Shown: positions 914 to 50,261 of the stretch, piece by piece
How positions within the stretch are numbered: position 1 is the stretch's first letter
Layout: every line of letters begins with the position of its first letter
Position numbers and translations under genes: made by a program
Notes under the pieces: generated by a model
Databases searched by the model: none
The model's input: the letters and a program-made list of their open reading frames with translations, nothing else
Told to the model about the DNA's origin: nothing
Assembly (NCBI GenBank): GCA_002269645.1
Contig: NIVC01001622.1
Coordinates: 1 to 64,000, forward strand
Reading direction: 5' to 3'
Length of the DNA: 64,000 bases
DNA from: Macrostomum lignano
Lineage: Eukaryota

Positions 914-1260
914 GCCTTTTTGTCGAGTGGCGATACGCTGGAACAACTTGGTGGTTTGGAGTCTACTTCTTTAGAACAGTGTCTCTGCATCAGCATCCAA
1001 CTAACCAGGACTCTCGCATTAAGACAGGATTTGCCTCACGTATTAAGCCGCTCCAATGAATTTTTTGCTGCATGCGTTGCGGGCACTTGTCTGTTTCTGC
1101 GCAGCACGTCAGTTGTCAAGCAGCGCGGCTTCGAGACTATGTCGGCCATGCTTCGTGGAGGTGGCATGTCTAAACTATTTCAAACTTGAAACCATTCTAC
1201 AGTCATTGATAATTTGCTTTCGAAATGTGTCAAAATGACCGCATTAGCATGGTTGTTCAG
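914..1260 (+). CDS. RNF213: RNF213-like putative exon 1 in window (in-frame TGA at 1187-1189 plus a probable frameshift near 1220)
   Basis: Polypyrimidine/CAG acceptor at 913 and GTAAGT donor at 1261. No single frame is open across the whole exon. Confidence 0.5.
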
Positions 1261-4200
1261 GTAAGTTATTCGTTTCTGATTTATTTCAAATCCGTTTTAT
1301 AAAATTGAAGATTAGGAAAATAAGTTTGTGCGATAGTTGGTGTCGCTAGTGGATGCAGGGTGTCGCTAGTTTGTATCGCTAGTTGATGTCGCTAGTCTAT
1401 GTCGCTAGTTGGGGTCGCTAGTAGGTGTCTGTAGTTGGTGTCGCTAATTGGTGTCGCTAGTGGGTGTCGCTAGTTGGTGTCGCTAGTTGGTGTCGCTGTG
1501 GTTGTCGCTAGTGGTGTCGCTACGAGCGTAGTTGGTGTCGCTAATTGTGTCGCTAGTGGGTGTCGCTAGTTGGTGTCGCTAGTTGGTGTCGCTGTGGTTG
1601 TCGCTAGTGGGTGTCGCTACGAGCGTAGTTGGTGTCGCTAATTGGTGTCGCTAGTGGGTGTCGCTAATTGGTGTCGCTAGTTGGTGTCGCTGGTGGGTGT
1701 CGCTACGAGCGTAGTGGGTGTCGCTAGTTGGTGTCGCTAATTGGTGTCGCTAGTTGGTGTCGCTAGTTGGTGTCGCTAGTGGGTGTCGCTAGTGGGTGTC
1801 GCTAGTGGGTGTCGCTACGAGCGTAGTTGGTGTCGCTAATTGGTGTCGCTAATTGGTGTCGCTAATTGGTGTCGCTAGTGGGTGTCGCTAATTGGTGTCG
1901 CTAGTTGGTGTCGCTGTGGGTGTCGCTAGTGGGTGTCGCTACGAGCGTAGTTGGTGTCGCTAATTGGTGTCGCTAGTGGGTGTCGCTAGTTGGTGTCGCT
2001 GTGGGTGTCGCTAGTGGGTGTCGCTACGAGCGTAGTTGGTGTCGCTAATTGGTGTCGCTAGTGGGTGTCGCTAGTTGGTGTCGCTAATTGGTGTCGCTAA
2101 TTGGTGTCGCTAGTGGGTGTCGCTAGTTGGTGTCGCTAGTTGGTGTCGCTAGTGGGTGTCGCTAGTTGGTGTCGCTAGTTGGTGTCGCTAATTGGTGTCG
2201 CTAGTTGGTGTCGCTAGTTGGTGTCGCTAATTGGTGTCGCTAATTGGTGTCGCTAGTGAGTGTCGCTAATTGGTGTCGCTAGTTGGTGTCGCTGTGGGTG
2301 TCGCTAGTGGGTGTCGCTACGAGCGTAGTTGGTGTCGCTAATTGGTGTCGCTAGTGGGTGTCGCTAGTTGGTGTCGCTAATTGGTGTCGCTAGTGGGTGT
2401 TGCTAGTTGGTGTCGCTAGTGGGTGTCGCTAGTTGGTGTCGCTAGTTGGTGTCGCTAATTGGTGTCGCTAGTTGGTGTCGCTAGTTGGTGTCGCTAGTTG
2501 GTGTCGCTAATTGGTGTCGCTAGTTGGTGTCGCTAGTTGGTGTCGCTAATTGGTGTCGCTAATTGGTGTCGCTAGTGAGTGTCGCTAATTGGTGTCGCTA
2601 GTTGGTGTCGCTGTGGGTGTCGCTAGTGGGTGTCGCTACGAGCGTAGTTGGTGTCGCTAATTGGTGTCGCTAGTGGGTGTTGCTAGTTGGTGTCGCTAGT
2701 GGGTGTCGCTAGTTAGCGGCTAATGGGTGTCGTAAGCTAAAAAACAGATAAAAATGAGTTTGTTAGTAGCAAAAGCATCAAGCACACAAAATATCTTAAA
2801 ATATATTAATTGTACCAACTATCTACACCTTCAAATGACTGACTAGTCTGATCACAAAATGCATCGTAAATCTCTGCTTTTAATTTTCAGCTGTATAACA
2901 GCATTTTCGTTGAATTGAAACATTTTGGCGCTGATGGCCTATCCGAGTTTGAGGATCTTGCTGTTGAAGGCCTCAAAGGCTTCTTTTCAATCAGCAGCTG
3001 GTAAGTTTTGTTTAATAATTCGTGTCTTTTGACTTCAACATATTCAGTTGAGAGTTAGCTCGTACAATATAGCCAAATATTAACGTTATCAAATAAATTT
3101 TAGAATAACATCGTGGCGCTTTTCGAAGATCAAACGGTACTAAATCAGCTTGAACTTAGAACATCGGAGGTGTTGCTCATGATTGTCTTTGAAAAGATGG
3201 AGCATGCCAGTTTCTCGGAGGTAGGGAAATGTACTTTTATATTTCACTGCTGTTGTTTATTCCAAATGCATTTCCAGACCATTTTTACAAAAGCCCTAGT
3301 TTGTCAATCAACTATCCGATTTCTCAACTGTTTCTATTTACCCGCCCGCAGCTCGGCCTCATCAACTTTGTAGGCAATATGCTCACAGGCTCGTACAAAA
3401 GGATGCAGTCGCGAAAGCTAGGCACTGTCATATCTAAACTTGTGCACAGCGTCTACGAAAAATTCATTCCAATGGCCTCGAACTCAAGACCGATGTACAC
3501 CTATTAATGGCTCTGGAGTGGCCGCTGTCCTCTTTTCTGCTGAGCAGTATTAGTGAGTTAAAATATTCATAATGAATAACCCACTGTACGTTTAAACTGT
3601 GATGACAATGCTGGCTGAAAAATCTTATCCTTACTTATTGTCAATCGCTTGCTCAGAGGAGAAGCAGTTCAGCAGCCTGCTAGACAATGACAGCCGCGGC
3701 ATACTCGAAGCCGGCGGCCGACAGGCGACCCGCCTGTTGGAACAGTTGCGCAACTCGCCTGCCAGCATAGTCTATGGCCAGATTGAGTTTATCAGCTCTC
3801 GGAAGGACAATATTGCCGGCTTACAGACTGTGCTAGGCTTTGAACTCAATCTGGATGACTGCGTCGGCCTACTGCAGGAGCGTAAAGCTGCGTTTGACAA
3901 AATGAAAGACGTCGTTGCGGCACTGGTGGCTTACTTCAAAAATGTTTTGGATCTGAAACTGCGTAAGTTTTGTTTTGTTGTATATCTTGCAAGTTTTCTG
4001 CTTTTTTTCTGTAGCAGAAAAATCAATGTAGCTCATCTGGACTTCCGAAAATTGTATTTCTGGAGAGTCGGAGACCTCAAAGTAGACTATGTATTTAATT
4101 AGAGGAACCTCTAAGGGGAACCTCTGAGAAGAAACCTCTGAGTGGAACCTCCAAGGGGAACCTCTGAGCGGAACCTCTAAGGGGAACCTCTGAGAAGAAA

Positions 4201-7200
4201 CCTCTAAGGGGAACCTCTGAGCGGAACCTCTAAGGGGAACCTCTGAGAAGAAACCTCTAAGGGGAACCTCTGAGGGGAACCTCTGAGGGGAACCTCTGAA
4301 AAGAAACCTCTAAGTTGAACATCTGTGCGGAACCTCTGAGGGGAACCTCTGAGAAGAAACCTCTAAGCGGAACCTCTAAGGGGAACCTCTGAGCGGAACC
4401 TCTGAGGGAAACCTCTGAGAAGAAACCTCTAAGGGAACCTCTGAGCGGAACCTCTAAGGGAAACCTCTGAGAAGAAACCTCTAAGGGGAACCTCTGAGCG
4501 GAACCTCTAAGGGGAACCTCTGAGAAGAAACCTCTAAGGGGAACCTCTGAGGGGAACCTCTGAAAAGAAACCTCTGAGTGGAACCTCCAAGGGGAACCTC
4601 TGAGCGGAACCTCTAAGGGGAACCTCTGAGAAGAAACCTCTAAGGGGAACCTCTGAGGGGAACCTCTGAGGGGAACCTCTGAAAAGAAACCTCTAAGTTG
4701 AACATCTGTGCGGAACCTCTGAGGGGAACTCTGAGAAGAAACCTCTAAGCGGAACCTCTGAGGGGAACCTCTGAATAGAACCTCTGAGCGGAACCTCTGA
4801 GCGGAACCTCTAAGGGGAACCTCTGAGCGGAACCTCTGAGGGAAACCTCTGAGAAGAAACCTCTAAGGGAACCTCTGAGCGGAACCTCTAAGGGAACCTC
4901 TGAGAAGAAACCTCTAAGGGGAACCTCTGAGGGGAACCTCTGAGGGGAACCTCTGAAAAGAAACCTCTAAGTTGAACCTCTGAGCGGAACCTCTGAGGGG
5001 AACCTCTGAGGGGAACCTCTGAGAAGAAACCTCTAAGGGGAACCTCTGAGCGGAACCTCTGAGGGGAACCTCTGAGCGGAACCTCTAAGTGGAACCACTA
5101 AGTGGAACCTCTGAGCGGAACCTCTAAGGGGAACCACTAAGTGGAACCCCTAACCCCCATTTTAGACACATACGAGTATGCATATTGGAAGTCCTGATTT
5201 GTGTTGGGAGATATTGTCAATTTTCAAGTTTCCATCTCGCTAATCTCCTTAACCTCAAAAGCACGCAGAGAGAGTACATGCCTGACGATTTGACAGTCGA
5301 AAGGGCAGCTGTACACCCTGTGTGAGCGTGTATATGAGTGCGTGCCTGTGTGTACATTTTTGGTGCGCTTGTATGTGCTTGGAATGGACAGATTTGCGGA
5401 AGACGTTGCGCTAAGGTGCCCGCAGCCCTACCTGTAAATATTATTATGTTGCTGTTTAAAATGAAGCCATGCACATGATTTCACAAATTCGAATTAGTGA
5501 ATCTGGCCTCACTGACCAGCCTGATGGAGAAGCAGCGTCTCAGTCAGACGGAAATCGGTCAACTGGTTGCCTGGCCCGGCGGCACTGCGGAGCCCTACGA
5601 CTTGGCTTATTTTAAACTGGAGAACCAGAGAGAGGCTCTCTGCCGCCTGTTGCCGCTGTTAGATGTTCTACGCGATAGTGCAACATTCTCTCGAATGCTG
5701 AGAACTAGAGCTGAGGCCCAAGCCAGGGCTTCTGCTGGTTCCGCGACTGCTAAGCTGACCGCTGATGCCCTGATAGCTTGCGCTGATGCTGTACTTACAG
5801 AGTGGCTAGCCAAGATTGACACAATGAAGAGCGGCACTATAACTATTGGTGAGATCAACCAATTTCTTGGCCAACGTCTGGTCAGCGGAGATCCGGACGC
5901 GCGATCTCGTCTAGCTAGAGAGTTTCGCGCCTTCGCTCTGGGCAACGAACAGGAGATGTCAGCGTGGGCTCGCACCTGCCTACAGAAAGTTGAATCGTTT
6001 AACAAATTGGCCAAGTACGCCCGGGTGGCCCAGCTTATTCAGAAAATCTATGAAAAATATCAGCTCTTCGGCGACCTGACTGCCCTTGACACCGTGATGC
6101 AGAGTAGCGGCGATAATCGCAGCATACCGCTGTCGCAGCTGCGCGCCGCCGATCTTAGCGACTACGATCAGCTGGAAGATATCTCGGCTAATGAGCACTG
6201 TCTGGCTTCTTTGGAGGCGTTCGCTTCTTGTAGGGAAATTGTTTATTGGATTAGGTAAGTTAATAATTGATTTTTAAATGTTTTTATATGAGAAATCGAT
6301 CAATAGCCTATTCATAGTTTGTAGGATGTAATAGTAGTTGTCCTGAGATCCCATCCTAACTTGTCCCGAGATCCCGTCTGAACTTGTCCCGTTGTCCCGA
6401 GATCCCGTCTGAACTTGTCCCGTTGTCCCGAGATCCCGTCTGAACTTGTCCCGTTGTCCCGAGATCCCGTCTGAACTTGTCCCGTTGTCCGAGATCCCGT
6501 CTGAACTTGTCCCGTTGTCCCGAGATCCCGTCTGAACTTGTCCCGTTGTCCCGAGATCCCGTCTGAACTTGTCCCGTTGTCCCGAGATCCCGTCTGAACT
6601 TGTCCCGTTGTCCCGAGATCCCGTCTGAACTTGTCCCGTTGTCCCGAGATCCCGTCTGAACTTGTCCCGTTGTCCCGAGATCCCGTCTGAACTTGTCCCG
6701 TTGTCCCGAGATCCCGTCTGAACTTGTCCCGTTGTCCCGAGATCCCGTCTGAACTTGTCCCGGGATCCCGTTCTAACTTGTCCAGAGATCCCGTCTGAAC
6801 TTGTCCTAAGATCCCGTCCCAACTTGTCCAGAGATCCCGTCATAACTTGTCCTAAGATCCCGTCCCAACTTGTTCCGAGATCCCGTCATAACTTGTCTCG
6901 AGTTTCATGTCATTGCGCATCTCGAGATCCCACTCCAAATTGTCCTGAGATCCGTTCCGACTTATCAAAAGGCCCTTCAGTACCCTCAGAGATTAAGCAG
7001 TTGCTTTGAAAATGTTACGGCAGCTCTTAAGCTACGCTTGAGTCAATAAAAAATCTGTTTACTTACCATTTAATTGACTCCTGTTCATGTTCGGTGCTCT
7101 TACGTCCTGATCTCTAAGCTAAGCTGCATACCGAAGGAAAATAGCTGCAAATTTTATCTGTTGGAAAAGATGTACTTTAAAACATACTAGGTCATTCTTA

Positions 7201-10200
7201 ATACCCTGCTCCTGAGGCCGAAAAAACCGAGGAAGGAAAGGAAATTTTAGCTGCCACCTTAAATTTTAGTGACAATGCGCAGGCAAACTACTTAAGACAG
7301 ACTTAGACGCTATATTAAAGTACTGTTAAAGATGAATCAACTGTTCCAGCTTTCCACTTTCATATTTATTTATACCATCTATGCTTGATTTTTGAATACC
7401 AAACTAATGCAGGGAAAACATTCCCAAAGCCGATCTAAAAACGTTTTTCGACCTGGCCATGATCTACGTCGGCGACGCTGGCGATATGGAGCAGAAACGG
7501 GTGGAAAATTTCTACCAAGCCGCTCAAGGCTTCGATTCTCTAATCTACGATATGCTGAGCGAGCGCTCCCAGCCAATCAGCTTGAATCATTTTCTGCGCC
7601 GCTGCGACCGGCCATTCACCAGCGCCAATGCCGATCACAGTCTGCCAGGGAAACTGCGCGATGCCGGTAGCAAAGTTGGCTGGTTTAAGACTATCAAAGA
7701 GAGTCAGGTGTGTACAACCGAGTTGATGTATTTTAGTTAATTGTTTCGCATCTGAAGGCTGCGTACGGCTGTTCAGTCTTAGGACTGGGGGTCGCTACAC
7801 ACACACACCCTCAATTACCCCAGCTAATGCTGACACCCATTTTACAGCTGGGTGAACTGAAGCAATGCAGATAAAAGTGTCTTTCTCAAGGACAAATTGT
7901 TCCCATGGTTGCATATATACTATAAAAATAAAGGCAGCTGAAATGACTTTCATAAGTTTAAATAAAAGCCCAAAAAGCTTGCAGGCGTAAACAACTTGCT
8001 AATTAGTTCAGCAATAATGTACATTGGCCAGTCCACTGAAATGTACATGGCCGCTTTAGGCTGGAATTCCGAGAAAGGCAATAAAAATTGGACCGGTGCG
8101 AGGGATAGTGTGAAAAGGCGCTGTTTAAGCTCTGGGGGTAAGAGCCAATAAAATGAGCCTTGGCTTTAAAAATACATTGCTTCTGTTTAACTCACTACTG
8201 AAATGAAAGTAGCTTACACGCAAATGTTCTAAGTAGGCAAACTAGTCATTGTAGTATCTGGATGAACTGAAGCAATTAGCATTAAAATTTTAATTCTTCG
8301 GCGATCTTGCATAACTTTTTTGATGAAAAATTCGAATTTAATGCTATTAAAGGGCGCTCAGTTTGGATTTTTAATTCAAGTACCCACCATGGAGGGCTTA
8401 GTGCGCTAGTTAATCTTCTAATTTTATTCTACGAGCTAATATATATTAATTTGACAAGAAAAACTGCCCACTCTGTCCCAGGGCTCCGTTGAGAAGTCTA
8501 CGCTAAAGAAAATCCAAGAGATACTGGAACGAGGCGAGATGGAAATCGGTTGCGATGTGCCATTCGACGAGCCATTCCGACTGCTAGTGGCCCCGGACGC
8601 TAAGCGGCCAGACGATAAGACGTCCGAGTTTCTATTCGAAGATATTCGAGATCTACAGTCGAAGCTGATGCTCATCGCCGGTCAGTCAGTCGAGAACGGT
8701 AAACTATTTGATCACTTTGTCAATCTGACGGACTCCGCGACTTCTCTGATTGATACCGTGAAGGAATTCCGGCGGCACTGCTGCTTGCTGTGCGACAGCT
8801 TGGTTATTAGGTATGCCAGAGCATTTCCAGCTCAACCAATGATACTAGCCTGAAATCAAACCTAGTCCTGGGTCCTAATTCGAAAAGTTCAAAATCAAAT
8901 AAAATTACCCACACACTAGCCCATCCTTTACACTGCTGAGTCTCTCTGACCAGACCCGCAGAAGTTGCTCAAGTTTGACAATTGATAGAACATTGATCGA
9001 AGATAGAAGATATTCAACAAAAGAGTAACCGAGCTAACTTAGCCAATATAGCTATTATAACATTTATACCTAAGGGCGCCTTCTGATTTTCCATTAACGC
9101 TCTTTAATCAAGGGATATTAATTTTATTGTACCATATGACGTTTTTCCCCAAGCCATTGTCTTTCTCCCTTCCACCATTCAGTGGACTTTTATTCTATCT
9201 TATCTATCTCTCTTCTCAGAGAACCGGCCAAAGAAAAGTCACAAAAATCGGACAAGAAATGTCTATGGCCGAAACCCCATTATCGGCTAATGCAATTATC
9301 GAGAAATAACGAGAGAGAGCTTGGAATTAACAGGCGACATTGTATATGTATAATAACTTACTGAAACGAGGAGAATGTCTATGCAGAATCTCCGAGGCGA
9401 AGCGGAGAATATTGACCAGATTCGCGGAGATTATGAGTATTCTCCGCTCGCTGTATTCGCGGGACACGTTTTGTCTGTGGTTTTGTCTACGTTTTGTTCA
9501 ACCAACCTCACTCTGGCTCAAGGCGTTAATTTTATTGTCTATGGCAGCGGTTACTTAGTGAGAATCTCCTCTAGCAAAGCACTAGCGACATAGACAAGGC
9601 GTACCAATAATAAAATTAACGCCTTGAGCCAGAGATAGACCCAATCACAGTGACTCAATTTGCACCGTTTCCTTTAAATTGCAGAGCCCACCTGGGCAAG
9701 GGCAAGCACAACAATCTAATGCTTGAGCTGCGATCGCACACCATTAATAGCAGCCATAACGAAATCGAACCAGCCCTGCAGCAGCTCAGCAGGGTGCTGA
9801 AATCCTGCCTGTCCGAGTGGAAGGCATTAATCGATGCAGCCAGACGAAAACACCACGTGCTCAATTATTTTTTAATGAGTCAAATCAAAGTTCTTCAGAC
9901 TGAGTTGGCGAAATTTTTTGCTACTATTAATGCCGGACAAGATGTAAGATTTGAGAACTTGTGTCTTGATATTTGTGCTAATAATAGTTAATAATTGATT
10001 ACACCTGCTCCAATTAGGCCAGTTCAGTCCATGTACTGGAGGGGGGTCGTCACACACACACCTTCAATTACCCCAGCTAATGCTGGCACCCATTTTACAG
10101 TTGGGTGAACTGAAGCAATGCAGAGTCAAGTGTCTTGCTCAAGGACAAAAATTGTTTCGAGTCGGATCAGGAGTCGAACCCCAGACCTTCCGAGTCCCCC

Positions 10201-37200: not shown

Positions 37201-40200
37201 ATTTTATTAATTCCGGAAACAAGCCTAGTTAAATAATTTGCCGTATTGTAATTTCAGGTGCAGTCCCGACGACAATTTTGGCTTCTTCCAAGACCGCTCA
37301 GACGGTGAAGGCGTGGTTTTCCGGTCTTATGTACTGCAGTTACTACTGTCCTATCATCATGAACTAGTAGTAGAGCAACTCACTGAGCACTTAACTCATG
37401 TGCTGATCCTAATTCAGCCTGAGGAGGAATTCCATCTGCGGCTAATTATATTGCACTGCTTTGAAGATGCCTGTTTGGTTGAATTGACGAGGTAAGCGCT
37501 ATTTCATTTGAGTGGGGCGCCGTTTCATTTGAGTGGGGCGCCGTTTCATTTGAGTGAGGCGCCGTTTCATTTGAGTGAGGCGCCGTTTCATTTGAGTGAG
37601 CGCCGTTTCACGTGGGGGCGCCATTTCACGTTGGGGCGCCATTTCATTTGATTGGGGCGCCGTTTCACGTGGGGGGCGCTATTTCATTAGAATGGGAGCG
37701 CCGTTTCACGTGAGGGGCGCTATTTCATTTGAGTGGGAGCTCCGTTTCACGTGAGGGGCGCTATTTCATTTGAGTGGGAGCTCCGTTTCACGTGAGGGGC
37801 GCTATTTCATTTGAGTGGGAGCTCCGTTTCACGTGGGGGGCGCTATTTCATTTGAATGGGGGCGCCGTTTCATGTGGGGGGCGCTATTTCATTCGAATGG
37901 GGGCGCCGTTTCATGTGGGGGCGCTATTTCATTCGAATGGGGGCGCCGTTTCATGTGGGGGGCGCTATTTCATTTGAATGGGGGCGCCGTTTCACGTGGG
38001 GGCGCCGTTTCACGTGGGGGTGCTATTTCATTTGAGTAGAGTGCCGTTTCACGTGGGGGCGCTTTTTCATTTGAGCGGGGACACAATATTATTTGAGTTG
38101 GAGACACAATCTTATTTGAGTTAAAGACAATCTTATTTGAGTGAGGACACAATCTCATTTGAGTTAAAGACAATCTTATTTGAGTGAGGACACAATCTCA
38201 TTTGAGTTAAAGACAATCTTATTTGAGTGAGGACACAATCTCATTTGAGTTAAAGACAATCTTATTTGAGTGAGGACACAATCTCATTTGAGTTGGGACA
38301 CAATCTCATTTGAGTTGGGGAAACAATCTCATTTGAGTGGAGACAATCTCATTTGAGTTGGGGGGGGGCGCCATCTAAATGGGTCTTTTGCGGCGCCAAT
38401 TGTCATAATTTTGGAACAGAACCCCACCTTGGCTGCGCCCCTTGCTCCTACTGATGCCAGACACAATCGCCTCGTTACACACTCAGGATGGACCCCGAGC
38501 GCCGCTGGCATCAAGCTCTCGACTGGCTGTCCACCAATCTGCCGCAGCCATTGCCGCCAGCTGTCAGCGCCGGGTCCAACTCAGTCACGCCAGCCTTTGT
38601 GTCCAGCCTGATTGGCCAGCTGCGTCGGCTCGCCACGTGGCGTATTGGCCTTGCTCTGCTGGCTAACAGAATCATTGCCAGCGGGTCTGTTGCTTCAGCT
38701 CTGGGCAGTGCCGATTTTCTCCAGCGGCTGGCAGACAAGCATCAGGTATATCATTATAGCCGTTGTGTTAGCGCTTTACTTTCTACGAGTATTCATTTCA
38801 AGTAGACTCAACAGAGTCGTTATAAATTCGAAATGCGTTTCTAAATTCATTAAGTGACGCAGATGCGCTTTGGATGCAACCACAGAATAACTAGATGGGC
38901 CAGTCAGCACATTTGCGTGTAAGCTACTGTCAGTTCAGTAGTAAGTTAAACCGGAGCATTTAAATGTATTTTTAAAGCCAAGGCTCATTTATTGGCTCTT
39001 TCCCCACAGCTTAAACCCTCCAACCGCGCCTTTCCACATTCCCCCCCCGCCCCGCCCCAATTTTATTGCCTTTCTCTCGGAATTCCAGCCTAAAGCGGCC
39101 ATGTACATTTCAGTGGACTGGCCAATGTACATTATTGCTGAACCAATTAGCAAGCTGTTTACGCCTGCAAGCTTTTGGGGCTTCTAAACTTATCAGTCGT
39201 TTCAGCTGCCTTTATTTTTATAAAATAGCTCATGTATTCTTCTTTGCTACTGAACTGAAAGTAGAAAGCTGTTTTACTAATAAGTATATATGCCTGTTGC
39301 CCATCTAGTTATTCTAATATCCGTGGACGCAACTCAGACAACTCAAACGACTTTGGGCCTATAGCACATGTAGATAGAAAGAAACGCCTACTAATTGACA
39401 GGCCTGGCCTCGTATCTACCTGCTCCGCTGCCTGTGCCGTCGGCTCGGCGTGTCAGCTGGCCTGGCAGCTCTGCGCCGCGATCCCACAGGCCTCGGCGTC
39501 GTCTTTGCCGCCGAGCTGAGAAGCCTCGAAGGCCGCTGTCAGGAGCCCGAGCTGCTGCTCTGTCTGTCGCCTGCTTATCGAAAACTGCGCGACGCTTTTT
39601 GGACCGGCTATTTGTCTGGAAAGCCCGAGTTCTCGGCCGCGATGAAGGTGGGTTGCAAATCAATTCGGATTTTATTCGGATTTACTAAACCGTAGCGGCC
39701 CCTGGTTCGATTCAAGGACTACTAAAGTACGAGTAGAAGGACGCTACACTCGAAATCTATGGAACATGTTTTGAAGGCCAATTTTCGTCGAGGAATACAC
39801 AACGGAGATAGGAAGCTTTCGATAGGAGGCAGATCCAATGTTCATCTTTTGATATGTTGTGCCTTTCTTATAGCTCTATTGATATTCATAAAGCTTTTCG
39901 TTCAGAAAATCAGGATTCTATGTTCATTTTGTATTCTACGTACATTTCCTGTACCTAAAAATCATTAAAATTCATGACACAGCTCAAATCTTTGGTTTTA
40001 TAAATCTATTTTATCATCTGTCACACATACTGTTACACAGTCAGCTGAGAATGACAAAATAGACTCATAAAAACCCATAAGATGAGCCGTGCCATTTTTA
40101 ATGGTTTTTAGGCAAGGGACATGTGCAATTTGTACGTAGAATACAAATTAACATAGAATCCTGATTCTCTGAACGAAAAGCTCTATGAATATCAATAGAG

Positions 40201-43200
40201 CTATAAGAGAGGCTCAGCCCTCCTATCGAAAGCAAGCAATAACAATCTTTGTGCTGAAAAAATGAAAACTTCCTATCTCCTTAGTGTATTTTTCTGCGAA
40301 AAGTGGCCTTCAAAACATTTTCCATAGATTTCGAGTTTTGCGTCCTTTATAAACGTTGCTTTAGTTGTCCTTGGTTTGATTGCGTGGGCGGCCACATTCA
40401 TTTATGTGTCCTGTGCACAATGCATTGCAACTCATTTCTATATCTACATGCTTGTACTCTTAATCAACTCATCCCCGCAGAAGATAAAGCTAAATAAGTC
40501 CGATGGGCATCTGATTGCTCTGGCAACCGCGGCCGGAGTGTACAAAGCTCGGCATATTGAAAGCGACTGTAGTAATCAAAATCTGGCTAATGCTGTGGAA
40601 CTCATGGCTGAGCACATGTCAAAAAGAGCCAAGGTAACTGGGGGCATATTTGTACTGCTGTCTGTATTAGCTGGAGTGTCCTCCAAGGCACTGAGACCCT
40701 GTGTGAGCAGTCTAGAGTATAGACATGACATGACATGTCTCCAATAATATAATTAAGATAGATGTGCAACCACAGCTCAGCCGCAGCAATTGCGCGGCGC
40801 TTCTGTAGGCTGCGTACGGCTGTTCAGTCCTAAGATTCGGGGGTCGCCACACACCCTCGATTACCCCAGCTAATGCTGGCACCCATTTTATAACCATACC
40901 CGTTATTTAATAAAGTCATGGGTAAACGGCAAGAGCAATTCGAAACCATGCCTGGTCAGCTAATTAGTAATCCTCGACTCAACTCCAGGAGATTTATGAG
41001 CAGCGCCTGCAGCCCATACTGGATGCCAGCTGGAACGGTGCCCACTCTCTAGCCTGCCTGGCACTTCACATGGCCTATACTCTGGCTATTAAATGCGATA
41101 CTGAAGACATATTAGTAAAACTATTTGTTGCCATGGCAACCGACGACGTGTCGGCCTACTATTTGCCCTGCATGCCGCACGATCAGCTGCACGAGCTCTA
41201 CAGAGCTGTTCGCAAGCAGAAGGGTGTGGAAGGCGATAACCCTACTGTCTACTGTGAGTAATAGCTTGTGCTTTTAGTTTTTTTCTTTTAAAACCATGCA
41301 GTATGAAATCAAAACTTCTTATACTATAAGTTATAGTCTTTTTTGTATTTCGATATATTAATTTCAAATTTCAGTTTGCCCAAACGGTCATCCATACTAT
41401 ATTGGAAATGTAAGTTTTTTCTGTTATTCTATGTTGAATTAACTTCATGTTAGCTTTAACATCTCAACAAGTCAGCAAGTCAACATCTCAGCAACTCCCA
41501 ACAAGTCACACTGCTGACAGTCACACTGCTGACGGTCACACTGCTGACAGTCACACTACTGACAGTCACACTGCTGACAGTCACACTGCTGACAGTCAAA
41601 CTGCTGACAATCAAACTACTGACAGTCACACTGTTGACAGTCAAACTACTGACAGTCACACTGCTGACAGTCACACTGCTGACAATCACGCTGCTGACAA
41701 TCAAACTACTGACAGTCACGCTGCTGCCAGTCAGATTGCAAAAAGCATTTCTCAGCTGGCTAAGCCGCACGGCCCCCACCCCATAACCCGCAGTGCGGCC
41801 GCCCCATGGAGCTGGCCACCTGCCCGGACTGTTCCGCCCCCATTGGCGGCTCGCAGCACAACTCGGCCGCTGGCAACAACCCGCTGCTAGCCCGCGACGA
41901 TCAGAGCCCACGCGGCTTTGTGGACCTCAACAGCACTGGCCAAGCGCAGTCAGTCCGCAACCTTACTCCCGTGGCAGTCGCACTGACCCGCATGCTGTTG
42001 TCTCTGGCCTCCCTAGCTGGCCGACCGGAGGCCGCCAACGCCGACTCAATGCGGCAGCACTTTCAACGCGACTCGGCCAGATTCTGTCAGGCTAGCGGGC
42101 ACAGCAGCGAGGATGCCTGTCTGGCTATTCATCTGGCTCTCGGTGCGCTAGCCGAAGCTCATAGTCGGCCTGGTCAACTGCAGCTGGCTACTCAGGATCA
42201 GCGCCGCGAGACTGAGAATCTACTGCGAGATCGGATTCTAGCTGCTGTCATTGAGAAACTGGCGGAACGGCTGCAGACTGCTAATAGGCAACTGGCCGAT
42301 GTACAGGTCAGTTTTGCACCCTGAGAGACTGAAATAGTATAATAACGATATAGTATTTAAACAAAATAATATCTTATGCTGGTCGTCAGTCCTTCAGTCC
42401 CGGTCCTTCTTTTCCAGTCCATCAGTCCCGACCCTTCATTTCCAGTCCAGTCCCAGTCCATCAGTCCCGGTCCTTCATTCCCAGTCCATCAGTCCCGGTC
42501 CTTCATTCCCAGTCCATCAGTCCCGGTCCTTCATTCCCAGTCCATCAGTCCCGGTCCTTCATTCCCAGTCCATCAGTCCCGGTCCTTCATTCCCAGTCCA
42601 TCAGTCCCGGTCCTTCAGTCCCAGTCCATCAGTCCCGGTCCTTCATTCCCAGTCCATCAGTCCCGGTCCTTCATTCCCAGTCCATCAGTCCCGGTCCTTC
42701 ATTCCCAGTCCATCAGTCCCAGTCCATTAGTCCCGGTCCTTCAGTCCCAGTCCATCAGTCCCAGTGTGACTCAGTCCCACTCCATCAGTCCCGGTCCTTC
42801 AGTCCTGACACTTCAGTCCCGATCCTTCAGTCCTGACACTTCAGTCCCGATCCTTCAGTCCATCAGTCCCGGTCCTTCATTCCCAGTCCATCAGTCCCGG
42901 TCCTTCATTCCCAGTCCATCAGTCCCGGTCCTTCATTCCCAGTCCATCAGTCCCAGTCCATTAGTCCCGGTCCTTCAGTCCCAGTCCATTAGTCCCGGTC
43001 CTTCAGTCCCACTCCATCAGTCCCGGTCCTTCAGTCCTGACACTTCAGTCCCGATCCTTCAGTCCTGACACTTCAGTCCCGATCCTTCAGTCCATCAGTC
43101 CCGGTCCTTCATTCCCAGTCCATCAGTCCCGGTCCTTCATTCCCAGTCCATCAGTCCCAGTCCTTCATTCCCAGTCCATCAGTCCCGGTCCTTCATTCCC

Positions 43201-46116
43201 AGTCCATCAGTCCCGGTCCTTCAGTCCCAGTCCATCAGTCCCGGTCCTTCAGTCCCAGTCCATCAGTCCCGGTCCTTCATTCCCAGTCCATCAGTCCCGG
43301 TCCTTCATTCCCAGTCCATCAGTCCCGGTCCTTCAGTCCCAGTCCATCAGTCCCGGTCCTTCATTCCCAGTCCATCAGTCCCGGTCCTTCAGTCCCAGTC
43401 CATCAGTCCCGGTCCTTCATTCCCAGTCCATCAGTCCCGGTCCTTCATTCCCAGTCCATCAGTCCCGGTCCTTCATTCCCAGTCCATCAGTCCCGGTCCT
43501 TCATTCCCAGTCCATCAGTCCCGGTCCTTCAGTCCCGGTCCTTCAGTCCCAGTCCATCAGTCCCGGTCCTTCATTCCCAGTCCATCAGTCCCGGTCCTTC
43601 ATTCCCAGTCCATCAGTCCCAGTCCATTAGTCCCGGTCCTTCAGTCCCACTCCATCAGTCCCGGTCCTTCAGTCCTGACACTTCAGTCCCGATCCTTCAT
43701 TCTCAATCCTTCAGTCCTAAATTGTTTAGTCTCCAACCCTTCAGTCCCAATCCTTCAGTCCCGATTCCAGTCCTTCAGTCCCAATTCTTCCATCTCCAAC
43801 CCTTCAGTCCACAGTCCTTCAGTCCCAATTCTTCCATCTCCAACCCTTTAGTTCCCAATCCTTCAGTCCCAGTCCTGCGGTCCCAGTCCTTAACTTTTCG
43901 ACCCGTTTCGGCACTATAAATGGCCATCTCAATACTCTTTAATTTAGTTCTACATATATAATGCCGCCAACGCATTGAGACGTGATCGAACTAGCTAAAA
44001 ACGCACAAACAGAGATATACAGGTGATTAGTGCTGCTGACAGGGATGACGACAGTTGGATCAGTTACGCTGTTTTTGATACGTCTTCTTATAATAATGAA
44101 TCGACGCCGTCAGAAACTTTCATCACCTGCCCGATGATGGCATTTCAACTTTTACTTTTCAACATCCCTGCGCTTCTGAATTCCAATAATTATAATTTCA
44201 ATTCTCTCAGGTGAGCAACACCAGCTCGCTAGTGAGTCTGGTACACGAGACTAGCCGAGTAGACAGTGAGCAGCCTGAGCAGGCGGCTGTCTGGCGCTAC
44301 CGTCAGGTTGTCACCGTTGAACACGCGGCCCAGCGATTGCGCGAGCTCAGCGGCGCTGCCACGGACGAGTTCGCGTTGGTGCGCGAGTTCTTCGACTTGG
44401 AGCCGGTGCTGCGGCACATCCGCTCGCTGCCGATTCTGGCTTGGCTGGCTGCGGATCTTGTCGCCGTGCATAGCGGCAATTTGAGCTTCGCTGAGGCCGA
44501 GTCAACCTCAGCCACCATCGACAGTCTGCGAACCAGGCGCAACGGGCGTTGGACAGAGGCGGTGAAAGTGTTCCAGGTAGTTTGGAACGACCTGCGCGAT
44601 CGGTTGAGCTACGCCAAGTACAAAGACTCGGGCAGATTGGCGCTTGATAAAGCTGGAGTTGAATGCACCGGCTCTTGGCCTGTTGCAGCCCTACTGCCTA
44701 GCAGGTGCGCTGTTTGTTTCATTAATTGCTTAATGAATTCCTTCGGCGACATTCCGCTATTAGTTTTAGAAGGCAGGGGCCATGTGCACCCTGGCGCACT
44801 CTGAGCGCCACATTGTCACACAACCGGCGAGAGGCATTGCTGTCCATTCCGTCGACTCCCCTGAGCAGGCACACACTCACACAGGAGTGTACAGCGGCCC
44901 TGACTTTATTTATCGTTAGGCATGTACACTTCACTGCACCTTGGGGGTTGGCCTTCAAGGCTGTGAATCGCACGACAGCTCCTTGGGCCAATTTCCGTGA
45001 ACAAGCACGGACTCGAATTGGATGTTTAGTTAACACTTGTCATACCTGCAGCACTGATGTTGATCAACTGGTTTTGAATAAAATATTTTCCTTGACCTTT
45101 CCAGGCGCCAGTGGGGCCGCTGTATAGTGGCGCTGATGCAGCTCCTGGCTGACACACAGAACCGCCTGCTAGAGCTGGCCAACTTGGGCCCGGAGATTGC
45201 CGAACCCGTAGATCTCGGCGCTGTTGGCGAGGGCGAAGGCGAGAGCGGCTTGACACAGTCGGCTGTGATCACTTACGACTCTGAACGCGACCTGCTGCCG
45301 CTGTTGCTAGGCAATGCCGCCTATTCGCTGCGGGTAGGCGAAGGCGGCCGGCTTGAATACAATTTCACCGGCCTGCAGACCCAGCTAGCCGATCGGTGCC
45401 TTCGCGGGCGTCGCCGAATTGTTGGCCATCCCAGACTGATCATCTACAAGGAGGAGTTCAACGTCAAGGAGCTGCTTGATAGGCTCCGGCGCTGCGTGCC
45501 CGGCCAGTCGGAGCGGCTGGACCTCGGCCTTGAGCAGGACCTGTTGAACGGCCTCGGCTCCGACCTGGCCACAGTTACCGGCCTAGTTGAGGACACTCTG
45601 CTCACCGTTATCAAGTTCCTCTGCGTCATGCAGCCGGAGTCTCCCGCCAGCCTAGAGCTCAGCCGCTTCTCTGCCGAGGTGCTTCGCATGCCGTCGACTT
45701 CGTCAGCTGATTTCGGCGCTGCTAACGGCTTGCCGGATTGCCTACGCGCCGCTCGCGTCACCGACGCCCGGGCCCTCTGGCTGCGTCTGGACCGGCTGCG
45801 CTGGCAGCTTCTGCTCAATGCCGGCATGCTTGAGCACTGCCTGCCCGATGCCTGTCGGGGCGAGCGTCAGCTGCCGATTGCGTCACCGGATTCGCCCCTG
45901 CCCAGCGGCATGTCGGGCAGGCGGGATCTGCTTAGCGAGCGCCTTCACCAGCTGCTGGCGCTGGACCTGCGCAGCGAGACCGCCCTGTCCGACTATCCGT
46001 TGTGCGAACTCGGCGACATCTCGGACGAGTACGTGGGCGTGTTTGACCGCTTCGACAAGCGACTGCTGTGCCGACACGCTGGCCTGCTGTGGGTCTGGCT
46101 TAACCGCAACGATTAA
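914..46116 (+). CDS. RNF213: RNF213/mysterin-like giant AAA+ ATPase and E3 ubiquitin ligase, 36 traceable exons, 5' end probably outside window, with apparent frameshifts
   Basis: Spliced exons join in frame at GT-AG boundaries and give RNF213 motifs in the expected order: LKTFFDLAMI, GSVEKS, EEVLLCSEDT, SGMGKS, MSKDFAT, DPDPSYELTLDNVKKMLAI..MGETGCGKT, FFDEVNTT, FVSLREVE, VVGKPGSSKSLA, ILDEIGLAEDSPSMPLKTLHPLLEDG, SNWALDPAKMNRG, EFFGLRDF, IFGSSFPRDQ, LYESLYDVLNQYY, EAGTF, RING, RZ finger CPNGH..CGRPM..CPDC..IGG..H, and C-terminal YDSERDLLPLLL. Exons: 914-1260, 2891-3000, 3104-3220, 3278-3552, 3657-3962, 5498-6254, 7413-7707, 8482-8810, 9685-9943, 10295-10561, 10947-11786, 12808-13643, 16131-16494, 17058-17402, 18285-18683, 21532-21848, 22857-23183, 24182-24515, 25466-25861, 27028-27707, 27894-28520, 29336-29483, 29578-30349, 33149-33421, 35289-35392, 35541-35873, 37258-37491, 38487-38745, 39402-39647, 40481-40633, 40989-41253, 41375-41409, 41794-42306, 44023-~44070, 44211-44704, 45105-46116. 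Confidence 0.95.
1340..2715. repeat. 13-bp minisatellite (TTGGTGTCGCTAG)n
   Basis: Direct tandem array. Confidence 0.97.
2891..3000 (+). CDS. RNF213: RNF213-like exon (LYNSIFVELKHF...)
   Basis: TTTTCAG acceptor, GTAAGT donor, one open frame. Phase mismatch with the next exon. Confidence 0.6.
3104..3220 (+). CDS. RNF213: RNF213-like exon (NNIVALFEDQ...SFSE)
   Basis: TTTAG acceptor, GTAGGG donor, open frame. Confidence 0.6.
3278..3552 (+). CDS. RNF213: RNF213-like exon with two apparent -1 frameshifts
   Basis: TTTCCAG acceptor. Coding-like peptide moves TIFTKAL to GLINFVGNMLTG to MALEWPLSSFLL. The GTGAGT donor at 3553 is in phase with the next exon. Confidence 0.55.
3657..3962 (+). CDS. RNF213: RNF213-like exon (stalk region)
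   Basis: Part of ORF 3599-4102; phase-1 junctions on both sides; GTAAGT donor. Confidence 0.8.
4103..5150. repeat. 14-bp minisatellite (GAACCTCTGAGGGG)n
   Basis: Direct tandem array. Confidence 0.96.
5498..6254 (+). CDS. RNF213: RNF213-like exon (stalk region)
   Basis: ORF 5497-6258; in-phase junctions; ends CREIVYWIR before GTAAGT. Confidence 0.9.
6340..6960. repeat. 31-bp minisatellite (GTCCCGAGATCCCGTCTGAACTTGTCCCGTT)n
   Basis: Direct tandem array, degenerate at the 3' end. Confidence 0.96.
7413..7707 (+). CDS. RNF213: RNF213-like exon (LKTFFDLAMIYVGD...)
   Basis: Resembles the RNF213 LKVFVDLASISAGE motif; in-phase junctions. Confidence 0.9.
7746..7897 (-). mobile_element. 5'-truncated CORE-like SINE copy
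   Basis: Reverse complement of the SINE core and tail. Confidence 0.8.
7925..8235 (+). mobile_element. dispersed ~300-bp repeat (MITE-like), copy 1
   Basis: Reverse complement of about 38905-39225. Confidence 0.8.
8482..8810 (+). CDS. RNF213: RNF213-like exon (GSVEKST...LQSKLMLIAG)
   Basis: RNF213-type GSVE and KLML motifs; in-phase junctions. Confidence 0.9.
9685..9943 (+). CDS. RNF213: RNF213-like exon (EWKALIDAARRKHHVLNYF)
   Basis: ORF 9650-9991; TGCAG acceptor, GTAAGA donor. Confidence 0.88.
10020..10212 (-). mobile_element. CORE-like SINE copy, A-box region deleted
   Basis: Reverse complement of the SINE core plus B-box (GAGTCGAACC on +). Confidence 0.8.
10295..10561 (+). CDS. RNF213: RNF213-like exon
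   Basis: ORF 10295-10582; strong acceptor; GTAAGC donor. Confidence 0.85.
10725..10875. repeat. 28-bp minisatellite (ACTGAGGATCTGGGAGGCTGGCCCAGCA), ~5 copies
   Basis: Direct tandem array. Confidence 0.93.
10947..11786 (+). CDS. RNF213: RNF213-like exon, AAA1 region
   Basis: LPRLEEVLLCSEDTRPEELLVFLQRCL and LYVIMHADRLTYE. Acceptor could be at 10946 or 10952. Confidence 0.92.
11941..12225. mobile_element. element related to the mini-MITE, with internal TGACGGTCACA repeats
   Basis: Starts ACCCGTATAAAAGT; degenerate GACGGTCACA motifs. Confidence 0.5.
12495..12770. repeat. 17-bp minisatellite (TTGACCCAGTGAACCAT)n
   Basis: Direct tandem array. Confidence 0.96.
12808..13643 (+). CDS. RNF213: RNF213-like exon, P-loop SGMGKS (probably AAA2)
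   Basis: VVLVHSDRSGMGKSL, FHLDL, WQELINFAKFFNKQ, MSKDFATR. Confidence 0.95.
13670..13790. repeat. short dispersed repeat family; relatives at ~5260-5450, ~10640-10700, ~44860-44940
   Basis: Shared CTCACACAGRGTGTACAGC core in both orientations. Confidence 0.6.
13872..16012. repeat. 23-bp minisatellite (GGGCTCGCCCATTTTGTACACTC)n
   Basis: Direct tandem array. Confidence 0.98.
16131..16494 (+). CDS. RNF213: RNF213-like exon
   Basis: SLNISDES, KRRWEHEVHPYVLFNHDRMSFTFFGF. Confidence 0.93.
16610..16800. repeat. 16-bp minisatellite (CAAGCTCGATTCTTCA)n, inverted relative of the 1-516 array
   Basis: Direct tandem array. Confidence 0.9.
17058..17402 (+). CDS. RNF213: RNF213-like exon, AAA3 Walker A and Walker B
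   Basis: MGETGCGKTRLV, VHGG, VLFFDE. Confidence 0.97.
17690..18215. repeat. dispersed repeat family with ~4 tandem ~78-bp CCAAT-rich units; relatives at 7190-7320 and 26195-26445
   Basis: Shared CTCTCATTGGCTGAGCTAGATTGGGCC and GAGGAAGGAAAGGAAATTTTAGCTGCCAC blocks. Confidence 0.75.
18285..18683 (+). CDS. RNF213: RNF213-like exon, AAA3 continuation
   Basis: VNTTSAVGLIKEIMCD, AACNPYR, LVYRVKPLP, VLWDFG. Confidence 0.96.
18837..21290. repeat. 15-bp minisatellite (AGTGAGTGGGATTCC / ACTGAGTGGGATTTC)n
   Basis: Direct tandem array with an 89-bp higher-order period. Confidence 0.98.
21532..21848 (+). CDS. RNF213: RNF213-like exon
   Basis: FMRRINDETKFVSLREVEK, ICYYSRL. Confidence 0.93.
22024..22780. 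repeat. 54-bp minisatellite (GGCCATAGACAGAAGCCC...), ~14 copies
   Basis: Direct tandem array. Confidence 0.97.
22857..23183 (+). CDS. RNF213: RNF213-like exon, AAA4 Walker A
   Basis: ALRENLFMM, PLFVVGKPGSSKSLAK, SFQCSP. Confidence 0.97.
23265..24035. repeat. ~32-bp degenerate minisatellite (TAGCGCCAATCTAGCGCCATAGAATAGGTTT)n
   Basis: Direct tandem array. Confidence 0.93.
24182..24515 (+). CDS. RNF213: RNF213-like exon, AAA4 Walker B and arginine finger
   Basis: VIILDEIGLAEDSP, ISNWALDPAKMNRG. Confidence 0.97.
24655..25258. mobile_element. foldback MITE-like element with long (~230 bp) inverted arms
   Basis: CAAGGACTACT...TCCTTG termini; left and right arms are reverse complements. Confidence 0.82.
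25466..25861 (+). CDS. RNF213: RNF213-like exon, AAA4/AAA5
   Basis: EFFGLRDFFSLVK, LLRNFSG, RYLLFITEN, IFGSSFPRDQ. Confidence 0.95.
26522..26991. mobile_element. foldback MITE copy with most of the left arm deleted
   Basis: CAGGGACTACTCAAGTAG start; right arm and core match the other copies. Confidence 0.75.
27028..27707 (+). CDS. RNF213: RNF213-like exon, AAA5, -1 frameshift at ~27288
   Basis: INRIKICMERG, LYESLYDVLNQYY, VDLGLGTHR. FPIPL resumes as INRMEKH in the -1 frame. Confidence 0.93.
27894..28520 (+). CDS. RNF213: RNF213-like exon, AAA6 region, -1 frameshift at ~28043
   Basis: VTTFDRLL, FDTEIQF; then VPEPTWLILQF...SCAKYLV in the -1 frame. Confidence 0.88.
28530..29226. repeat. (CTGA)n microsatellite, ~175 units
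   Basis: Near-perfect tetranucleotide array. Confidence 0.99.
29336..29483 (+). CDS. RNF213: RNF213-like exon (DWLSFEAA...EAGTF)
   Basis: Translated by hand; RNF213 EAGTF motif; in-phase junctions. Confidence 0.88.
29578..30349 (+). CDS. RNF213: RNF213-like exon, E3 module start
   Basis: PALACFVAFVDKEDNLD, AFPFAWCF; GTAAGT donor. Confidence 0.9.
30385..33070. repeat. 23/24-bp minisatellite (ATGCCTCACTAGAATCGCCCCTCA)n
   Basis: Direct tandem array; a 69-bp trimer at the 5' end. Confidence 0.97.
33149..33421 (+). CDS. RNF213: RNF213-like exon
   Basis: ILFESFYQQ...RWMAQV...WDRVQCVTFFLRHV; in-phase junctions. Confidence 0.85.
33540..35200. repeat. 30-bp minisatellite (AACTAAGGCTGCATTATCGAGAGGGTCATA)n with 37-bp variants
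   Basis: Direct tandem array. Confidence 0.97.
33589..33679. mobile_element. 91-bp mini-MITE inserted in a minisatellite
   Basis: 14-bp perfect TIR ACCCGTATAAAAGT / ACTTTTATACGGGT; related start at 11941. Confidence 0.7.
35289..35392 (+). CDS. RNF213: RNF213-like exon preceding the RING
   Basis: LLEREKIAFQEAECIKSLERILENANESVRAKVMR; TGTAG acceptor, GTAAGT donor. Confidence 0.82.
35541..35873 (+). CDS. RNF213: RNF213-like RING-finger exon
   Basis: CQLC..SCGDHLCGRC..CPRC, then RNRCNAFLMDVVSRLCF. The donor (GTGGAA) was inferred from phase. Confidence 0.9.
35960..37070. repeat. ~31-bp minisatellite (GCATCTCAGCAACTCCCCATTGAGCCAATTG)n
   Basis: Direct tandem array. Confidence 0.97.
37258..37491 (+). 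CDS. RNF213: RNF213-like exon
   Basis: VVFRSYVLQLLLSY, HCFEDA. Confidence 0.88.
37500..38370. repeat. compound ~21-bp minisatellite (GGGGCGCCGTTTCATTTGAGT grading to GACACAATCTCATTTGAGT)
   Basis: Two abutting arrays sharing TCATTTGAGT. Confidence 0.93.
38487..38745 (+). CDS. RNF213: RNF213-like exon
   Basis: ORF 38488-38805; in-phase junctions. Confidence 0.8.
38905..39265 (-). mobile_element. dispersed ~350-bp MITE-like repeat, copy 2, TIR core TTCAGTTCAGTAG
   Basis: Inverted match to 7925-8235, plus short TIRs. Confidence 0.78.
39402..39647 (+). CDS. RNF213: RNF213-like exon
   Basis: WPRIYLLRCLCRRLG, AYRKLRDAF. Confidence 0.88.
39713..40373. mobile_element. foldback MITE, full copy
   Basis: Same termini and arms as 24655-25258. 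Confidence 0.82.
40481..40633 (+). CDS. RNF213: RNF213-like exon
   Basis: CCGCAG acceptor, GTAACT donor, phase 0 at both ends. Confidence 0.75.
40762..40888 (-). mobile_element. SINE 3' tail fragment
   Basis: Reverse complement of about 59690-59828. Confidence 0.8.
40989..41253 (+). CDS. RNF213: RNF213-like exon leading into the RZ finger
   Basis: YYLPCMPHD (compare RNF213 AFLPTMPED), ends TVY. Confidence 0.88.
41375..41409 (+). CDS. RNF213: 35-nt micro-exon encoding the RZ-finger N-half (FCPNGHPYYIGN)
   Basis: TTTCAG acceptor, GTAAGT donor, restores CPNGH in phase on both sides. Absent from the ORF track. Confidence 0.92.
41505..41730. repeat. 15-bp minisatellite (ACTGCTGACAGTCAC)n
   Basis: Direct tandem array. 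Confidence 0.95.
41794..42306 (+). CDS. RNF213: RNF213-like exon, RZ-finger C-half and E3 core
   Basis: CGRPMELATCPDCSAPIGGSQH, RNLTPVAVALTRMLL. Confidence 0.94.
42385..43880. repeat. 28-bp minisatellite (CAGTCCCGGTCCTTCATTCCCAGTCCAT)n
   Basis: Direct tandem array. Confidence 0.97.
44023..44070 (+). CDS. RNF213: possible short RNF213-like exon, 3' boundary uncertain
   Basis: ATACAG acceptor, VISAADRDDDSWISYA. Only a weak in-phase donor was found. Confidence 0.45.
44211..44704 (+). CDS. RNF213: RNF213-like exon
   Basis: VWRYRQVVTVEH, LRHIRSLPIL, AALLPSR. Confidence 0.92.
45105..46116 (+). CDS. RNF213: RNF213-like terminal exon (C-terminal domain), TAA stop
   Basis: CIVALMQLL..QNRLL, TYDSERDLLPLLLGNAAYSL; AATAAA at 46171 and 46299. 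Confidence 0.94.
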
Positions 46117-46842: not shown

Positions 46843-47515
<673 letters not shown>

Positions 47516-49402: not shown

Positions 49403-50261
49403 ATGGAGAGCTCTAATTCTATGGTCAGTATAGCTATGGCGAATTCTAGCAACAACGGCAGCTGCTCTGACAGCCTCCAGCTAGACAGGTGGTCATTGGC
49501 CACCGGGCTTGCATTGGGAGCGATCTCGTTTGCCACTGTCTTCGGCAACTCCCTGGTACTTCTCGCTGTCCTGCTGCACACATCGCTGCGCTCTACCACC
49601 GTCATCTTTGTCTCTAACCTGGCCGTTGCTGACCTGTTGCTAGGGGTCTGCGTTCTGCCTCTGAGCAGCGTGCTGGAAATTACCCACGGCTGCTGGCTGT
49701 TCGGGCCGCTGCTCTGCGACCTGTGGGCCTCAATTGACGTGCTGTGCTGCACCGCCAGCATCATGTCGCTGTGCGCCATCTCAATGGATCGCTACGTCGG
49801 AGTGACCCGGCCGCTGCAGCGGGGCCGTATTGTCAGCAAGCGGCGGGCCTGCGTCATTGTCCTGTGTGTCTGGCTGCTGTCAGGCCTCGTGTCAGTCGGC
49901 CCGCTTATTGGCTGGCGAGACCAGCAGCAGCAGCAGGCAGCAGACGGCGATCACCAGCAGTGCGCGGTGTCCGACAATCCGTCCTACATTATGTTCTCCT
50001 CGCTGTTCTCGTTCTATCTGCCGCTTGGCATTGTCGTGTTCTTCTACATCCGGGTCTACCAGGCGGCGGCGCGCCAGACTCGCTTCCTCGCCTCCGGGGT
50101 CAAGACGACTCGAGCGACCGGCCACGGTTCCTCCAATGCCTCGCATGCCACTGCGTCTGACACCGTCACGCTGCGGGTACATCGCGGCGGCGCCGGAGCT
50201 GGTGGCGGCCGCGGCGGTCCATCGGGTGACCTGCAGCTCAGCTCGCGACTGCTCGCAGCAG
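49403..50261 (+). CDS. GPCR exon 1 (N-terminus, TM1-TM5, ICL3)
   Basis: ORF 49403-50299; donor GTGAAG at 50262. Confidence 0.93.

Follow-up and report, generated by a model that had tools for sequence, protein, structure and literature searches.

Results

Identification of the gene and its exon structure

Sequence comparison identifies the locus BOX15_Mlig015539g2 of Macrostomum lignano as one assembled copy of a genuine RNF213/mysterin-family gene. The window, by which we mean the whole stretch of DNA analysed, covers the first 64,000 nt of scaffold NIVC01001622.1 (180,983 nt; assembly Mlig_3_7, GCA_002269645.1), the deposited scaffold being 100% identical to it over 27256–56116, and its overall layout is one of short exons amid introns packed with tandem arrays. 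When a rough concatenation of 31 open frames from positions 914–46116 was used as a query, all human and mouse RNF213 chains in the PDB were matched (E ~7e-290), and the ten matching stretches follow one another in the same order in both sequences, beginning at the linker and ending in the CTD, a collinearity that is also seen with eight other RNF213-like proteins. An earlier reading of the same DNA, made from the letters alone (hereafter the sequence-only reading), had placed an RNF213/mysterin-type gene at 914–46116 in an invertebrate genome and had named collinear alignment with RNF213 as the check; the coordinates and identity hold, the ten ordered stretches pass that check, and the host is indeed a flatworm. 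RNF213-type sequence at this locus is already deposited in GenBank without a family name, the annotation being limited to 37256–46116 (PAA65739.1, 'hypothetical protein BOX15_Mlig015539g2, partial', 1,070 aa).

The gene model was guided by PAA82849.1, a 99.6% identical sibling protein of 5,501 aa that stems from RNA-seq-guided annotation and whose residues 1071–5501 could be covered almost gap-free on the window by exact 6-mer anchoring. After junction refinement, GT–AG borders were present in all 34 introns and the spliced exons reproduced the guide protein. Exon borders derived from splice-site weight matrices alone had proved too weak and were superseded by this model. It comprises 35 coding exons on the forward strand, together 4,431 codon equivalents, with the acceptor of the window's first exon at position 914 and the end of the stop codon at position 46116. 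The sequence-only reading, with 36 exons and about 4,450 codons, had thus counted one exon too many and come within 20 codons of the total; its remark that the gene is invisible as a unit in the track of open reading frames, scattered among satellite-filled introns, is a fair one, tandem arrays making up 18.6 kb of the 45.2-kb gene span (41%) and 58% of the intron length. The exons are as follows.

914–1260, +, exon 1 in the window (gene exon 6 of 40); contains three frame-shifting indels
2891–3000, +, exon 2; contains one indel
3104–3220, +, exon 3; sibling-guided model
3352–3552, +, exon 4; contains one indel
3657–3962, +, exon 5; sibling-guided model
5498–6254, +, exon 6, linker/stalk; collinear human RNF213 homology begins here
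7413–7707, +, exon 7; sibling-guided model
8482–8810, +, exon 8; sibling-guided model
9685–9943, +, exon 9; sibling-guided model
10295–10561, +, exon 10; sibling-guided model
10947–11786, +, exon 11; sibling-guided model
12808–13643, +, exon 12; AAA2-type P-loop DRSGMGKS at 12826–12849
16131–16494, +, exon 13; sibling-guided model
17058–17402, +, exon 14; AAA3 Walker A GETGCGKT at 17172–17195, Walker B VLFFDE at 17385–17402
18285–18683, +, exon 15, remainder of AAA3; sibling-guided model
21532–21848, +, exon 16; sibling-guided model
22857–23183, +, exon 17; AAA4 Walker A GKPGSSKS at 22981–23004
24182–24515, +, exon 18; AAA4 Walker B IILDEIG at 24195–24215
25466–25861, +, exon 19; sibling-guided model
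27028–27707, +, exon 20; conserved KFPIPLINRMEKH motif split by a 1-nt deletion after 27287
27894–28520, +, exon 21; 1-nt deletion after 28045 (CCCC>CCC)
29336–29483, +, exon 22; sibling-guided model
29578–30349, +, exon 23; sibling-guided model
33149–33421, +, exon 24; sibling-guided model
35289–35392, +, exon 25; sibling-guided model
35541–35870, +, exon 26, RING finger at 35551–35685; GG>G at 35870 breaks frame or donor
37258–37491, +, exon 27; GenBank partial CDS PAA65739.1 begins at 37256
38487–38745, +, exon 28; sibling-guided model
39402–39647, +, exon 29; sibling-guided model
40481–40633, +, exon 30; sibling-guided model
40989–41253, +, exon 31; sibling-guided model
41375–41409, +, exon 32, 35-nt mini-exon; N-terminal half of the RZ finger, FCPNGHPYYIGN
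41794–42306, +, exon 33; C-terminal half of the RZ finger, CGRPMELATCPDCSAPIGGSQH, at 41794–41859
44211–44704, +, exon 34, CTD; sibling-guided model
45105–46116, +, exon 35, CTD; stop codon included

The 5' end of the gene

The 5' part of the gene is cut off by the start of the scaffold, which falls within a satellite-filled intron, the one that precedes exon 6 of 40:

1–517, no strand, 16-nt satellite array at the scaffold start, inside the intron after gene exon 5; assembly break

At the sibling locus on NIVC01000446.1 (hereafter L001), residues 1–1070 are encoded by five exons, the fifth of which ends 157 nt before the position aligned with base 1 of the window. Hence 1,070 of 5,501 codons (19%, the first five exons) are absent from the window for a reason of assembly, including the whole Cys-rich and low-complexity N-terminus, and the description of the gene as near-complete in the sequence-only reading, which had overlooked the truncation by the scaffold end, was overstated. 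In PAA82849.1, this N-terminal part begins with several zinc-ribbon-like CxxC pairs (a weak match to the Pfam model Zn_ribbon_NOB1, E = 0.01), followed by a Ser/Glu/Lys-rich stretch of about 600 aa within residues 1–1070; no counterpart of these features was seen in the alignment with human RNF213. The 'Mab-21' and 'EF-hand' labels carried by fragments of this protein in UniProt were not reproduced by Pfam.

Domains and catalytic motifs

The domain order is as the sequence-only reading had it, with linker/stalk, AAA ring, RING, RZ and CTD in succession. Against human RNF213, the 800-aa AAA3–AAA4 region reaches 765 bits. Of the four Walker motifs, which had been described as intact, three are identical to those of the human protein (AAA3 Walker A GETGCGKT, AAA3 Walker B LFFDE and AAA4 Walker A GKPGSSKS), and the fourth (AAA4 Walker B ILDEIG) differs by conservative I/V changes only. 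Both modules thus keep the Walker A Lys and the Walker B Glu expected, at the level of sequence, of nucleotide-competent AAA units; the counterparts of these residues are K2426/E2488 and K2775 in human RNF213 and K2387/E2449/K2736/E2806 in mouse RNF213 (PMC12075652).

The RING finger (35551–35685) can be aligned to its human counterpart and keeps the full set of eight Cys/His ligands, and the Pfam model zf-C3HC4_3 gives E = 9e-6 with a score of 25.8, just below the gathering cut-off of 27. Its histidine lies one residue away from the human position, the flatworm sequence having C-x2-H-x1-C where human RNF213 has C-x1-H-x2-C.

The RZ finger is assembled from the mini-exon 32 (41375–41409) and the beginning of exon 33 (41794–41859), and is recognized by the Pfam model ZnF_RZ-type (PF20173) above its cut-off (E = 2e-10). 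The possibility that its N-terminal half is degenerate or frame-shifted was considered and rejected, this half being encoded by the 35-nt mini-exon. The flatworm finger, FCPNGHPYYIGNCGRPMELATCPDCSAPIGGSQH, is nearly identical to that of human RNF213, TCPNGHPCSVGECGRPMEQSICIDCHAPIGGIDH. The C-x3-H...C-x2-C ligands and the Cys/His pair are conserved at six of six residues (human C4505, H4509, C4525, C4528, C4516 and H4537), and the first four are those which we take, following the UniProt annotation, to be the zinc ligands. The catalytic pair in mouse RNF213 is C4462/H4483 (PMC12075652), to which, as we infer from the offset, human C4516/H4537 would correspond.

Sibling copies and paralogues

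The sibling protein PAA82849.1 (BOX15_Mlig015539g5, NIVC01000446.1) has 99.6% amino-acid identity to the window gene over residues 1071–5501, and its locus has the 35 exons, the introns and the intronic satellites in common with it. Unlike the window, the sibling locus has an intact frame, five upstream exons, a 17-kb intron insertion and another downstream neighbour. In a search of a representative library with the AAA3–AAA4 region, the M. lignano protein PAA65746.1 was 100% identical, and its 90% cluster includes PAA82849.1; a 241-aa AAA3 query matched only short fragments, at 53% identity or less. The AAA3–AAA4 query returned 4,602 representatives at E < 1e-3 in the 50%-clustered library, a number whose low-scoring tail is expected to include other AAA+ ATPases. 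The best matches outside M. lignano were from a nemertean, gastropods, bivalves, a hemichordate and amphioxus, and among the matches checked, on a best-hit basis, every named one was RNF213 or rnf213-like and the others were unnamed hypothetical proteins.

Within M. lignano, RNF213-like genes form at least four paralogue groups, that is, at least three besides Mlig015539. Mlig025717, Mlig021635 and Mlig004148/006754 have the same architecture, with 35–42% identity over 3,200–4,300 aa and 58–63% in the AAA core. They represent older paralogues, clearly separate from the copies that arose by neopolyploidy.

Neighbouring gene and repeats

Downstream of the RNF213 gene lies a gene for a rhodopsin-type aminergic GPCR (49403–50299 and 61216–61632, both +). 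Its first exon encodes TM1–5 with a DRY motif (Pfam 7tm_1, E = 2e-51), and TM6–7 (NPVIY...) follow about 11 kb further downstream, with a satellite-filled third-loop intron between. The closest solved relatives are the alpha-1A/1B adrenergic receptors (E = 9e-62), and the product is likely an octopamine or alpha1-adrenergic-like receptor.

Two very long and pure tetranucleotide microsatellites are present, (ACTG) x 175 in intron 21 (28529–29226) and, shortly after the end of the RNF213 gene, (TAGA) x 169 (46844–47515), together with at least 16 other intronic arrays with units of 13–89 nt (for example, 13871–16014, 18830–21248 and 30421–33085). The longest open reading frames of the window, on either strand, lie inside arrays (53474–55899, 33683–35199 and 22029–22772), one example being a minus-strand frame of 457 aa at 54616–55989. 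These frames, like the long minus-strand ones at 33633–34475, 22006–22758 and 6274–6843, were rejected as genes, being translations of tandem repeats.

In L001, about 17 kb of extra sequence (L001 23369–40365), including a called 122-aa ORF (L001 30871–31239), occupies the intron matching window 17403–18284; insertion of a mobile element is its probable origin. At L001 69229–70499, about 730 nt after the RNF213 stop, there is a long ORF that is unrelated and belongs to a called 808-aa product.

Frame breaks

The sequence-only reading had the exons splice into about 4,450 codons and missed the frame breaks: in the locus as assembled, the exons do not form one open frame, eight 1-nt homopolymer indels shifting it, so that with these and the 5' truncation the reading frame is not uninterrupted. 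All eight, as judged against L001 and, where it overlaps, against L002 (copy g1, NIVC01001621.1), lie in runs of two to four identical bases:

after 1176, AA>A
after 1185, TTT>TT
at 1232, AAA>AAAA
after 2974, AAAA>AAA
after 3479, GG>G
after 27287, one base absent
after 28045, CCCC>CCC
at 35870, GG>G at the exon 26 donor

The last of these is the reason why the GenBank model starts at 37256. At 27287, the other two copies carry A and T (both Leu) where the base is missing from the window. Tiny introns at the frame switches 27288 and 28046 were considered and rejected, DNA alignment to the two sibling copies showing single-base deletions.

The indels and the substitutions between the window and L001 are distributed as a mosaic: exons 1–9 and 17–26 (6,711 nt) contain all eight indels and no substitution, whereas exons 10–16 and 27–35 (6,581 nt) contain 44 substitutions and no indel (Fisher p = 1.3e-9). 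The 44 substitutions are divided into 31 synonymous and 13 non-synonymous changes, none of which creates a stop, giving a pN/pS of 0.13 (binomial p = 1e-10 against neutrality). Copy g1 has two private single-C homopolymer deletions of its own, equivalent to window positions 12901 and 29937, which coincide with the start and end of its truncated 1,691-aa model, PAA65746.1. Fragmentary genes of this family in Mlig_3_7 are thus delimited by consensus indels.

Discussion

Origin of the frame breaks

The eight frame breaks are most probably residual, unpolished homopolymer-length errors in a Canu/PacBio long-read consensus. The assembly was made with Canu from PacBio CLR reads followed by Pilon polishing; by REAPR, 64% of the bases were free of errors, and blocks with 95% identity or more add up to 180 Mb (PMC5730564). 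In stretches where one copy does not differ from another, short reads would align best to the error-free copy, and errors in the other copy would therefore escape polishing. Such a mapping bias would fit the mosaic of indels and substitutions exactly. A point against an artefact is that L001 is clean in the same segments, which calls for the extra assumption that short reads mapped preferentially to the error-free copy.

Two other explanations of the locus have to be weighed against a consensus artefact. The copy in the window might be a truly decaying duplicate, a young pseudogene with real frameshifts that arose after a recent whole-genome duplication; eight frame breaks within 10 kb of coding sequence, the GenBank annotation of the unbroken 3' part only, and a neopolyploid, highly redundant genome in which selection on one copy could be relaxed would all agree with this. 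Real decay, however, is expected to give about ten times more substitutions than indels, whereas the 6.7 kb of exons that hold all the indels are free of substitutions, indels are lacking where the copies do differ by substitutions, every indel is a change in homopolymer length, and the substitutions that exist give a pN/pS of 0.13 and introduce no stop codon. Because of the mosaic and the pN/pS ratio, an artefact is favoured over decay, and we regard a pseudogene as unlikely. It is very unlikely that the scaffold is instead a largely redundant or chimeric re-assembly of the g5 locus, with no separate gene copy. The known redundancy of the assembly, the substitution identity of exons 1–9 and 17–26 to L001 and the alignment of the introns, including satellites, to L001 at 94–98.6% point in that direction; against it stand the 44 exon substitutions in the remaining segments, the insertion of about 17 kb in L001 relative to the window, and the downstream flanks, which differ (the GPCR gene in the window, the unrelated ORF in L001), similarity between the two stopping about 350 nt past the RNF213 stop. 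With consensus errors as the preferred explanation, private homopolymer indels within duplicated regions of near identity are what makes a 5,501-aa gene of Mlig_3_7 appear at sibling loci in pieces of 1,070 aa and 1,691 aa. Gene counts and calls of 'partial' or 'pseudogene' in the M. lignano genome need to be read with such indel fragmentation in mind, and the locus is of practical value in showing how a redundant neopolyploid assembly can break up the annotation of a gene.

Predicted mechanism and possible function

By analogy to mammalian RNF213, the full-length protein of about 5,500 aa would consist of an N-arm, a linker, a dynein-like AAA ring of six modules, two of which (AAA3 and AAA4) are nucleotide-competent, a hinge, an E3 module with RING and RZ, and a CTD. 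Judging from the alignments, the flatworm gene has kept the catalytic motifs on which the mammalian mechanism depends, and enzymatic activity, inferred from mammals, would follow the same course. As described for the mouse and human enzymes, ATP binding at AAA3/AAA4 would allosterically activate the E3 (PMC12075652), whose activity would bypass the RING and proceed by transthiolation via the Cys/His pair of the RZ finger, and the substrates may be both protein and non-protein.

An immune role of the flatworm RNF213 is plausible by the same analogy, but the uncharacterised RNF213-based immune system suggested in the sequence-only reading goes beyond the sequence, in which no feature demonstrates such a role. 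A more specific proposal, which we put forward tentatively and consider rather doubtful as it stands, is that the four or more diverged paralogue groups, multiplied by neopolyploidy, constitute an interferon-independent, cell-autonomous pathogen-coating system with ATP-gated RZ transthiolation of the mammalian type. Flatworms are not known to have an interferon system. There is a considerable possibility, though somewhat short of an even chance, that the gene is intact but has as its main job something other than pathogen defence, namely a lipid-droplet/metabolic, proteostatic or developmental role such as those ascribed to vertebrate RNF213. Nothing at the locus links the gene to immunity, its sole neighbour in the window is the aminergic GPCR gene, and the sequence reveals no interferon-type regulation. 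A non-immune role is nevertheless opposed by the full conservation of the RZ transthiolation site, which is required in mammals for LPS ubiquitylation, by the RNF213-like families, which in molluscs as in M. lignano are expanded and diverging in the way typical of immune genes, and by the reaction of clam homologues, which have been listed among the genes responsive to PGN and poly(I:C) (PMC7430831).

An RNF213 with complete catalytic equipment in an early-branching flatworm extends the documented range of the family, and the role that RNF213 played before interferon-based immunity could be addressed here in an invertebrate that is genetically tractable. M. lignano is transparent, RNAi-amenable and transgenic, and, if the pathogen-coating proposal is true, could serve as a model of ancestral RNF213 function. 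Our literature search found no paper that pairs RNF213 with Macrostomum.

Comparison with known RNF213-family proteins

Homologues from invertebrates (molluscs, nemerteans, hemichordates and amphioxus) are already widely annotated as 'rnf213-alpha/beta-like', and the window gene is therefore an unsurprising new member of a known family. Its relation to the rnf213-alpha-like proteins of lophotrochozoans and deuterostomes, such as those of Lineus longissimus (XP_064634464.1), Lottia (ESO94720.1), Mizuhopecten (XP_021359260.1) and Glandiceps (XP_077980129.1), is one of about 50% identity over the 800-aa AAA3–AAA4 core and of about 28–30% identity, collinear, over about 3,700–4,100 aa; these proteins belong to other phyla and have shorter N-termini (4,200–4,900 aa in total length). 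Collinearity with human and mouse RNF213 (PDB 8S24, 9JWG, 6TAX and 7OIK) extends over the linker, AAA ring, hinge, E3 module and CTD, but similarity to the human protein is low outside the AAA3–AAA4 core (123 bits for the RING-to-RZ region) and its N-arm is barely alignable; the 5,501-aa flatworm sibling also differs from human RNF213 in its N-terminal Cys-rich, zinc-ribbon-like motifs and long low-complexity stretch. ZNFX1 has the RZ-type zinc finger (Pfam PF20173) in common with the window gene and is an SF1 helicase without AAA ring or RING. In place of a ZNFX1-type helicase domain, which was not found in the window gene, the flatworm protein has an AAA ring and a RING, and it is RNF213-like throughout.
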